A program made the position numbers and the translations under genes. Shown piece after piece: positions 29,556 through 31,630 of a stretch of DNA of 64,000 nt; position 1 is the stretch's first letter, and every line of letters begins with the position of its first letter. This DNA comes from Ostrea edulis. Taxonomy: Eukaryota. Under the pieces are notes generated by a model. It saw nothing but the letters and a program-made list of their open reading frames with translations, had not been told where the DNA came from and searched no databases. The stretch spans positions 60,450,001 through 60,514,000 of the forward strand of contig NC_079165.1 in the NCBI RefSeq assembly GCF_947568905.1. Direction: 5' to 3'.

Positions 29556-31630
29556 TTATCCTTGGACACGAAGGTCACCCCGCTTAAGCTCCTCTTCCAG
29601 TTTGTAGGTGTAAATTGCAGCATCCCCGCAGTACTTGACGTTGAACCATTCTTCATAACCTGGTACCTGTACAATATCACAAAAAAGAGTGTAGCATAAT
29701 CCTATTCTTATGCCCTTGACCTTTGACCTTAAAACTAAACAAGTTCAGGAATTTCATCCTCTCCCTTGTGTAAACAGAGTTCAAATTATAGAATAAATGA
29801 ACTATAACTTTTTAAAAAGCTCAGCAATATATATGCACCTCTATATAACAAGCAAAAGCAAGGTTAAGGTTAAGATGAAAGGTTACATGACATTTATATA
29901 TTAGTTATAAATATAGATAATACCTGAGAAATTATTTGCCCACTATACCAGGTTACTTCGCCATCAGTGTCAGTGAAAGCATGCTGCACCTTTTTGCCAA
30001 CAACTACAGGAACTTGCTCATATGTTTTTCCTGCTGCAGCACAGAGTGACTTTTCAACAAGAGACATAATGTTTTCTAGGAGTTCCTGAACTGACAAGTT
30101 CACCCTCTTCTCACCCACTTTTTTCGAGAATGAATACACATTTCGATCATTAACTTTCTGATGAAACACATTCTTTCGAAACAACAGCTGAGTTTTCAGT
30201 GCAGATATTTTGTCCTTCTTGGTTTTAAGAATGCTAAGTGCAGTAAAAAATAATTAACCTCATCCTGAGACTGCCAGAGCCCCCAGATTTGAATGTCATT
30301 GACATAGGATTCCATTTTTTGGATTCTTCTTTCTTCTTTAGCTGCCTCCTCTGCTAACTTTTCATGTAATTTCCTCCTAGTTTCTTCACGAATAATATGC
30401 AATCTGTGCTGATAAGATTTCCTAAGTCTCTTCACACTCTTCCTTGCACTTGCACAGATTTCTTTTCTTTCACTTTCGTCCTTGATCTGTAGCTATTCCA
30501 TTGTTCGATTGTTGCAAAACGACAACATAGCCTCGCTAGTAATCAGAGAAATATTCGGTTTCTCTTGGAGTAAACGGTCCAGTTGTCCAAACAGTCTCAC
30601 TGAACTTATTGTCTTTTGGAGTAGCTTTCAACTTTTCCTTCAAATCATTTTCAACATCGGCCCATTTCCCACCAGGAAGGTAATCTTGAAACAGTCTGCA
30701 TTACACGTGTTAACGATGGGAGCATAACTTCCAATACTGCAATGACCTGGTCGTCTGTGTCACTAGGAGTTACAAGCTTTTGATATATTGCAGATGAAGC
30801 AAGATGTTCTTCGCTTACAAATGACAGAACAACAGATCCAATTATGAAATTTCTAAAGTTAATGTTTTGAAGGTAGTTGATCATTTCAACATAATAAACT
30901 TTCATGTCAAGAATGGATACATCTTTACTTTCAATCAAACACCACAGCGGCTTTGTAATTTGAGTTCCGAAACTAGTCCATAAGAGCCCTACAGCCACCC
31001 AAGTATTCTTGAATGCCAAGGTCATGTTTAACAGCTTTTAGCAACCTATTGCTGTCCCCTCCATTCAGAAAACTTACCACAAAATCAGATAGGAAGAACA
31101 CACTGGCTGAATTGCTGAATAAGATATTAAACCTATTCTCCCTGAATCTTTCCAATGGCGAAGCTGCAATGCAAGCCTTTCTCTTTTAAATAGTCGCTGA
31201 CTAAAACCATAAATTGTCCATGAGCACCATTCTTTTCATCCCCACCCCTAGAGAAAGCTTTTGATGATGTCCGCACAAGTCTTGTTGTTCCAGATTCGTT
31301 TCCTTTCTTGAATGAAGGGTCAAAAATTGGTGGTTTTACTTTCAAAAATTACATTCTCTGTCTCCACTAAAGACTTTTCTGCTGCTTCAACAAGATGCAC
31401 AAGAACATGCAAAGAACAGAAAAAGTTACACAGTCTACTTAACTTTGTTTTTTCATCATCGCTCATGTCATTCCAAGGTAATTGTTCCCTTAGTACCTCT
31501 GTTCGAAATTCCTGTAATAAATCATTAAATTTCATTTGCGTGCTTGCTCGGTCTGACATTGTTGCGACAATGTTTTTCATAATTGCTTTCGAATCATCAT
31601 TATTAGCTGTTTCACTTGATTCATCTATAT
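29556..31630 (-). pseudogene. Frameshifted, 5'-truncated transposase (KolobokP-like) with C-terminal Spin/Ssty Tudor-like domain
   Basis: Fragments in shifting frames: ATMSDRASTQ, NFFCSLHVL, ESGTTRLVRTSSKAF, RFRENRFNILF, ITKPLWCLIE, TPKDNKFSETVFGQLD, FRKNVFHQ..YSFS. Terminal intron 29667-29923 (GT-AG intact); last exon 29556-29666. Confidence 0.8.

Follow-up and report, generated by a model that had tools for sequence, protein, structure and literature searches.

A Spin/Ssty Tudor-like repeat at the C-terminus of a predicted hAT-like transposase family, traced from a dead copy in Ostrea edulis

Does a cut-and-paste transposase of animals carry its own reader of histone methylation? The question is raised by a 64,000-nucleotide (nt) stretch of the Ostrea edulis genome (assembly GCF_947568905.1, contig NC_079165.1, positions 60,450,001-60,514,000 of the forward strand; this whole stretch is called the window below), in which the remains of a transposase end in what the initial annotation had described as a spliced, C-terminal Spindlin-type Tudor domain. 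We found that the C-terminal domain of this window copy is a genuine Spin/Ssty Tudor-like repeat with its aromatic cage retained. As judged from its relatives, the domain belongs to the transposase family and is not a captured host exon, in keeping with the earlier view of it as part of a cut-and-paste enzyme. The window copy, at 29556-31631 (-), is a dead, 5'-truncated, frameshifted transposon copy, and since it is a fossil, the interest lies in the family that it represents.

The C-terminal domain of the window copy

The 65 amino acids (aa) obtained by splicing the end of the window copy match the Pfam family Spin-Ssty (PF02513) at positions 1-49 of the 50 in the profile, with an E-value of 6.7e-11 and a score of 42.3 bits against a gathering cut-off of 25 bits; the relatives P0034 and P0081 score 44.0 and 37.7 bits. 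When PDB sequences were searched with phmmer, the window domain matched Spindlins 1-4 only (E 3e-20 to 2e-15), and for a profile of the whole transposase family Spindlin was again the sole match in the PDB. The best stretch of SPIN1 lies in its repeat 2, where 61 residues align without gaps and 21 are identical, the count given in the initial annotation; repeats 1 and 3 of SPIN1 give 23.9 and 9.3 bits, respectively. The copy consists of the following parts.

29556..29558 (-): stop codon of the transposase, from the translation
29559..29666 (-): last coding exon, with the second half of the Spin/Ssty domain (VPGYEEWF...GDLRVQG), from the translation, Pfam and the SPIN1 alignment
29667..29923 (-): phase-0 GT..AG intron of 257 nt, inserted in the domain after ..ISQ
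29924..30010 (-): first half of the Spin/Ssty domain, PVVVGKKVQHAFTDTDGEVTWYSGQIISQ, with the residues that correspond to SPIN1 F141 and W151
30011..30303 (-): conserved helical tail module, with a frameshift near 30245
30304..31631 (-): what is left of the DDE transposase core, spread over about five shifted frames

The intron has its GT donor at 29923-29922 and a pyrimidine-rich acceptor, ...TTGTACAG; the last exon, read on the minus strand from 29666 to 29559, translates as VPGYEEWFNVKYCGDAAIYTYKLEEELKRGDLRVQG and holds the equivalents of SPIN1 Y170, D173, Y177, D184 and D189. With residue 3 of the window domain set against SPIN1 132, F141 corresponds to F, W151 to Y with a W just before it, Y170 and Y177 each to Y, and D173 to D, and GDLR is retained, so that the cage assignment made in the initial annotation is recovered residue by residue. 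The SPIN1 cage residues F141, W151, Y170 and Y177 agree with those of Su et al. (PMC3967050), who also described the anchoring of H3 A1 and R2 by E142, D189 and D184; the window equivalents of these three anchors are T, D and E.

Two of the checks suggested at the outset, a search with the Spin-Ssty hidden Markov model (HMM) and structure prediction, lead to Spindlin. The fold test was made on a family member, P0045, in place of the window copy. The AlphaFold model of P0045:870-1035 (predicted local distance difference test score, pLDDT, 91.6) shows the helical tail module joined by a short linker to a barrel of five strands, and all 46 of its PDB matches at E<1e-3 are Spindlins 1-4, including complexes with H3K4me3, H3K4me3-R8me2a, K4me3-K9me3 and H4K20me3. 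The best superpositions on Spindlins have a root-mean-square deviation (rmsd) of 0.8-1.1 Å over 64-68 residues at 34-39% identity.

The three-repeat make-up of Spindlins is absent from the transposase, which has one repeat, at its C-terminus. Because of this single C-terminal repeat, three transposase-derived gene models of Mya arenaria with 676-871 aa (P0034, P0039 and P0092) bear the name 'SPIN3-like' or 'SPIN4-like protein'. These database names are misleading, since the proteins are not Spindlin orthologues, and should be corrected to transposases.

Searches by tblastn with full-length relatives place the window copy from 31631 to 29565 and show that only the C-terminal ~570 residues remain of a protein of ~970-1100 aa (residues 396-967 of P0037, for example). 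The N-terminal ~400 residues, with the first catalytic Asp, are missing, and the upstream frame is broken between 31631 and 29924, where it switches about six times and meets at least one in-frame stop, which agrees with the earlier description of the copy as a pseudogene. Because of the missing Asp and the several breaks, this copy is incapable of any reader or transposase role. The core remnant preserves the second catalytic D (MSDRAST, 31539-31559), the CxxH motif (FFCSLHVLVH, 31395-31424) and the putative catalytic E (NKFSETVW, 30587-30610), and the tail module its motifs GLWQSQ (30265-30282) and ALKTQLLFRKNV (30167-30202). The first half of the Spin/Ssty domain shares exon and frame with the tail module.

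The domain in the transposase family

Relatives were sought among 1.84 billion representative proteins with a piece of the core that lacks Spin sequence (window:30654-31037:-). This search returned 82 relatives, which were then scanned, together with their cluster members, with the window domain and with HMMs of the family. We found that 27 of the 33 related proteins that reach the tail module carry the Spin/Ssty domain, or its first half, at the extreme C-terminus. Taxon range and copy numbers are lower bounds here, as the protein word-index searches with P0045, the P0034 domain region and an alignment gave very few matches, probably because coiled-coil words dominate. In three lineages the core, the tail and the complete domain are encoded by a single uninterrupted open reading frame (ORF), namely P0045 (1035 aa, L001 3416-6523), P0087 (1099 aa, L002 1081-4380) and P0117 (932 aa, L006 8001-10799). 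The architecture of a transposase with a C-terminal Spin/Ssty domain is present in bivalves, an annelid and a nematode.

The intron that divides the window domain recurs in the family. A Mya arenaria copy (L003) has a 285-nt intron at the same position, and nine other representative ORFs end in "...ISQV" followed by junk, as expected when a phase-0 GT intron after ISQ is read through; the domain-splitting intron is therefore old in part of the family. In the maximum-likelihood core tree, each side of the midpoint root includes Spin-bearing members, while the three Spin-less tips are scattered, two of them being sister to a Spin-bearing tip. The simplest reading of the tree is that the Spin/Ssty fusion is ancestral to the sampled family and was occasionally lost.

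Conservation of the cage was counted over 24 first halves and 12 second halves of the domain. The position of F141 is F in 20 of 24 sequences; the W151 position is aromatic, and the residue preceding it W, in 20/24 each. All 12 second halves have Y or F at the Y170 position and D or E at that of D173, and Y stands at the Y177 position in 10 of the 12. The anchor positions are likewise kept, with D or E for D184 (11/11) and D, E or N for D189 (10/10). Since overall identity among the family proteins is only 30-40%, this conservation speaks for selection on the pocket and thus for its use.

Two further observations concern the C-terminal end of such proteins. In P0101 (Solemya velum KAL5013434.1), most of a Spin/Ssty domain is followed by ~45 C-terminal residues that run into ...YRYTAYRQLARWAWGFPGKEVRVVLPSCAV, an end resembling the KolX / P2X7 'cytoplasmic ballast' motif in the supplement of the Kolobok paper cited below; P0101 is probably a chimeric gene model joining two different transposon fragments. 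Among AFDB cluster matches, uncharacterised proteins of 660-1280 aa also end in a helical tail module with a C-terminal barrel, one of them, R7TD85, bearing the name 'SGF29 C-terminal domain-containing'. In related transposases, this tail may therefore be followed by another Tudor-type H3K4me reader.

The enzyme, its copies and the surroundings of the window copy

No Pfam model matched the core in the window transposase pieces or in ten full-length members, and for 36 core segments, with E-values of up to 10 allowed, the 25 most-matched families listed include neither a transposase family nor any hAT family, PF05699 among them. The AlphaFold model of P0045:280-850, built on 36 sequences (pLDDT 88.8; predicted template modelling score, pTM, 0.78), has an RNase-H-like sheet followed by a large helical insertion. 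In a Foldseek comparison of this core model with the PDB, Hermes, a hAT transposase, came first (E 8e-7), followed by ISCth4, RAG1/Transib and the P element transposase, and among Swiss-Prot models the top 30 matches were all hAT-derived (FAM200, KIAA1586, ZBED5/9, ZMYM1, Ac, RICESLEEPER etc.). The family motifs read ..TDETSK.., ..MSDRAATE.., ..FFCGLH.LVH.. and ..NKF.E..FG..D.LLR.., which we take to resemble hAT blocks, the likeness of E..FG....R to the hAT block being judged by eye. By its modelled fold, the enzyme is an unclassified hAT-like DDE transposase. It resembles hAT enzymes (Hermes, Ac and Buster-type domesticates) in giving its best fold matches to them over ~500 residues and in the pattern D..TS, SD.A.., CxxH and E..F[GS] followed by a helical C-terminus, but it differs from them in having no match to the Pfam hAT dimerisation or RNase-H families even at E 10, and in its N-terminus, which is a long coiled coil; neither a BED nor a THAP finger was found in the transposase.

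The initial annotation had assigned the copy to KolobokP, a label that we rejected. KolobokP was defined by Kojima and Bao (2022) by long terminal direct repeats (~450 or ~660 bp), two zinc fingers, an opposite-strand His-Me nuclease and RR/YY termini, and Data S5 of the same paper gives the Kolobok pattern as DGxWxKRG, a CCHC finger, SS..ME, GDGDSS, C/DxNH, an H..C..C finger and TQxNESxN; a Tudor or Spin domain is not mentioned in the paper. The present family has none of the Kolobok motifs and a hAT-like fold. There are no direct repeats of 100 bp or more around the ORF in L002, L004 or the window, no conserved Cys/His clusters after the first catalytic D or between C/DxxH and E, the places of the two Kolobok zinc fingers, in an alignment of 11 full-length members, and no HNH or His-Me Pfam match at E up to 1 in the ORFs flanking the element in L001, L002, L004 and the window, which are short ORFs only. 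Moreover, 4- and 5-mers of the family are absent from 1.1 M characters of the Kolobok paper's supplements. What the two share is that both are DDE transposon lineages abundant in bivalves and annelids; what sets the present family apart is that, in the loci examined, it lacks long terminal direct repeats, the CCHC and second zinc fingers and the His-Me nuclease.

By the evidence of its relatives' genomic copies, the window copy belongs to a multi-copy, cut-and-paste DNA transposon family. In one assembly, three loci that differ in their neighbours hold the copies P0037, P0084 and P0085, which share at least 90% identity. Clusters of 9-11 members and fragments, such as P0029 and P0073, extend over many contigs, and in Mya arenaria alone at least eight lineages can be told apart, each in a 50%-identity cluster of its own. 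At L006, L007 and L008 the DNA is shared up to ...CATAACCAG, 103 bp past the stop codon, beyond which the flanks diverge completely; the Spin-coding part therefore lies inside the repeated unit. The L004 ORF is flanked by a candidate inverted repeat, imperfect and at least 86 bp long (1429-1514 against 6400-6317, 81%, with a second inner block), and near it stands an ambiguous candidate for an 8-bp target-site duplication, AACATTTT/AACATTTG, with a 7/8 match, each in one copy only. No convincing inverted repeats were found in L002 or in the window.

At L002 the octamer TTGTTTAC occurs eight times within the 1.6 kb that follow the transposase ORF (4771-5632) and once upstream (692), with an inverted copy at 5303; these octamers may be subterminal repeats bound by the transposase. 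A 705-aa family member of the P0073 cluster, P0111 (MDD9817516.1), was deposited under a metagenome-assembled genome (MAG) of Gammaproteobacteria, on a 2.2-kb contig that is most likely host DNA mis-binned into the MAG.

The initial annotation had placed the copy at the 5' end of a gene. It does lie upstream of one, but its end is ~2.85 kb from the neighbour's first coding exon (26386-26703, minus strand), and another repeat stands between the two, namely a ~1.2-kb element at 27486-28700 that resembles a miniature inverted-repeat transposable element. This element has 40-nt terminal inverted repeats, 93% complementary, and each of its subterminal regions contains 21-bp tandem repeats (at 27566-27618 and 28584-28643). 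On the other side, a satellite array at 32000-33149 (145-bp unit, eight copies, 94%) begins ~370 bp past the truncated 5' end of the transposase remnant, and a second array occupies 35460-37000 (142-bp unit, 11 copies, 87%). Both arrays have the motif GGTCAAAGGTCAAG in common, a 24-nt piece of which also lies inside the Spin/Ssty intron, at 29711-29734. A run of 30 G is found at 33441-33470.

A possible histone-mark reader and its counterparts

We propose that the intact enzyme would begin with a coiled coil, followed by the RNase-H-like core with its all-alpha insertion, then by the helical tail and, at the C-terminus, by the single Spin/Ssty domain. In intact copies this domain would bind to a histone tail bearing a methyl mark, an H3K4me3-type mark being the likeliest, hold the transposase complex on nucleosomes with that mark, and so bias excision or integration toward marked chromatin, as chromodomains do for the integrases of chromoviruses. 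On balance we lean towards this reading, in which a hAT-like transposase has an ancestral Spin/Ssty reader that tethers its complex to methylated nucleosomes. An H3K4me3-type mark is the best guess, because the closest match is repeat 2, which has a self-contained pocket, and because two of the three H3 A1/R2 anchors are kept. Whether an ancient and still recently active animal family goes as far as to aim its integration at promoter chromatin through its own H3K4me3-type reader is a more doubtful matter, which we put forward as a tentative possibility. The Spin/Ssty domains of the transposons and the Spindlin genes of animals may, in addition, be linked by evolution in one direction or the other.

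Several findings weigh against a targeting reader. SPIN1 works as three integrated repeats while the transposase has one, and oligomerisation of the transposase could produce multivalency of an unpredictable kind. The same SPIN1 pocket also binds H4K20me3 (PDB 5Y5W), and the specificity for a mark is therefore unreadable from sequence. In the family, the equivalent of SPIN1 E142 is not conserved, and one lineage has L at the Y177 position. At least one lineage, P0057 (L004 and L005, which are one locus), has an intact ORF but no such domain, and the 1.6 kb after the ORF contain no Spin-coding sequence either; the enzyme can thus do without the domain. Only the 3' end of the element could be defined when its 5' end and a target-site duplication, be it the 8 bp of hAT or the TTAA of Kolobok elements, were sought in L004 and in the L006, L007 and L008 copies. 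Finally, the distance of the window copy to a gene start is one anecdotal case that says nothing on targeting.

Some of these same findings bear on the other explanations. The reader might be real and part of the transposase and yet serve a role other than the choice of target, such as boosting the element's own transcription, sensing repressive marks (such as H3K9me3 or H4K20me3) on copies that have been silenced, or acting as a methyl-arginine decoy, for example for PIWI-pathway factors. Spindlin1 is described as a transcriptional coactivator; pocket 2 of SPIN1 accepts H4K20me3 and repeat 1 binds methyl-arginine (PMC3967050), the window domain also aligns to repeat 1 at the 23.9 bits given above, and the Spin-less lineages with intact ORFs mark the domain as accessory. 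We nevertheless regard such a role as rather unlikely, the best match being repeat 2 with its conserved H3R2/A1 anchors D184/D189, and the precedents of readers fused to enzymes of transposable elements (TEs) concerning mostly tethering. It is less probable still, and in our estimation improbable, that the family consists of immobile host genes, that is, domesticated transposases with an acquired Spin/Ssty reader and a role as chromatin factors. Annotation pipelines do name members 'SPIN3-like' or 'SPIN4-like', and terminal inverted repeats and target-site duplications are unproven in the copies examined, but near-identical copies stand at different loci in unrelated flanks, fragments and pseudogenes are numerous, the window copy among them, many lineages with a mutual identity below 50% coexist within single genomes, the D, D, CxxH and E motifs are conserved, and the L004 ORF is enclosed by the candidate inverted repeat.

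An element of the KolobokP or another Kolobok group would fit the taxonomic overlap, KolobokP being rich in bivalves and annelids, and Kolobok is related to hAT and P, with no Kolobok structure to enter in the fold comparison; this identity is highly improbable all the same, given that the family reads DETSK / SDRAAT / CGLH / NKFxExxFG where the Kolobok signature is absent, that its 4- and 5-mers, long direct repeats and a His-Me nuclease were missing from the material searched above, and that the top fold matches are all hAT. The intron within the window domain and the broken frame upstream of it could be taken to mean that the two Spin/Ssty exons are a captured or neighbouring pair of host exons, placed next to a transposase remnant by chance. 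The probability of this is negligible: it is refuted by the intronless single ORFs of three lineages, and it is at odds with the exon and frame that the first half of the domain shares with the tail module and with the occurrence of the architecture in bivalves, an annelid and a nematode.

If a reader-guided integration is true, the family would provide the first case of a DNA transposase under the guidance of a histone-mark reader of Tudor type (Spin/Ssty); the Spin-less sister lineages would serve as natural, built-in controls, and the module could inform the design of vectors for chromatin-directed integration. Reader fusions are the clearest known route by which a transposon chooses the chromatin on which it lands, and they are known mainly from chromodomains and PHD fingers and mostly from retrotransposons. 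To this principle the Spin/Ssty transposase adds a new class of reader and a family of cut-and-paste enzymes that Pfam does not cover. Full-text literature searches turned up no description of a transposase with a domain of the Spin/Ssty or Spindlin type. A reader on a TE enzyme is of a known kind, and it is the Spin/Ssty reader on this enzyme family that appears to be new.

Compared with repeat 2 of the Spindlins (SPIN1-4), the transposase domain is of the same Pfam family and the same fold (~1 Å, 34-39% identity), and it keeps the cage and the equivalents of D173, D184 and D189. It differs from the Spindlins in being one repeat instead of three, in not keeping the equivalent of E142 and in showing a W-Y pair at the W151 position instead of a single W; moreover, it ends an enzyme of 900-1100 aa, whereas Spindlin is a small stand-alone reader. 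Among TE enzymes, the closest parallels are the chromodomain integrases of chromoviruses and MAGGY, and Gypsy-10_Ec32 of Ectocarpus (Genome Biology 2025, PMC12477816), whose C-terminal Tudor domain made it, to its authors' knowledge, the first TE to carry one. All of these have a methyl-lysine reader of the Royal family at the C-terminus of the inserting enzyme, and for the chromodomain integrases the reader was shown to direct integration. Unlike these integrases of long terminal repeat retrotransposons, with their chromodomains or Tudor domains, the present enzyme is an animal cut-and-paste DDE transposase, and its reader is of the Spin/Ssty type. Grau-Bové et al., who searched by the Pfam domains of TEs, reported 823 fusions of chromatin domains with TEs, mostly of PHD and Chromo domains and including hAT-Chromo fusions in a sponge; domain surveys based on Pfam could not detect the Spin/Ssty transposases because their core has no Pfam model. 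The sponge hAT-Chromo fusions likewise unite a hAT-type DNA transposase with a reader of histone methyl-lysine, but here the reader is of a different class, and the Spin/Ssty fusion is, on the simplest reading, ancestral to a family that spans several phyla.

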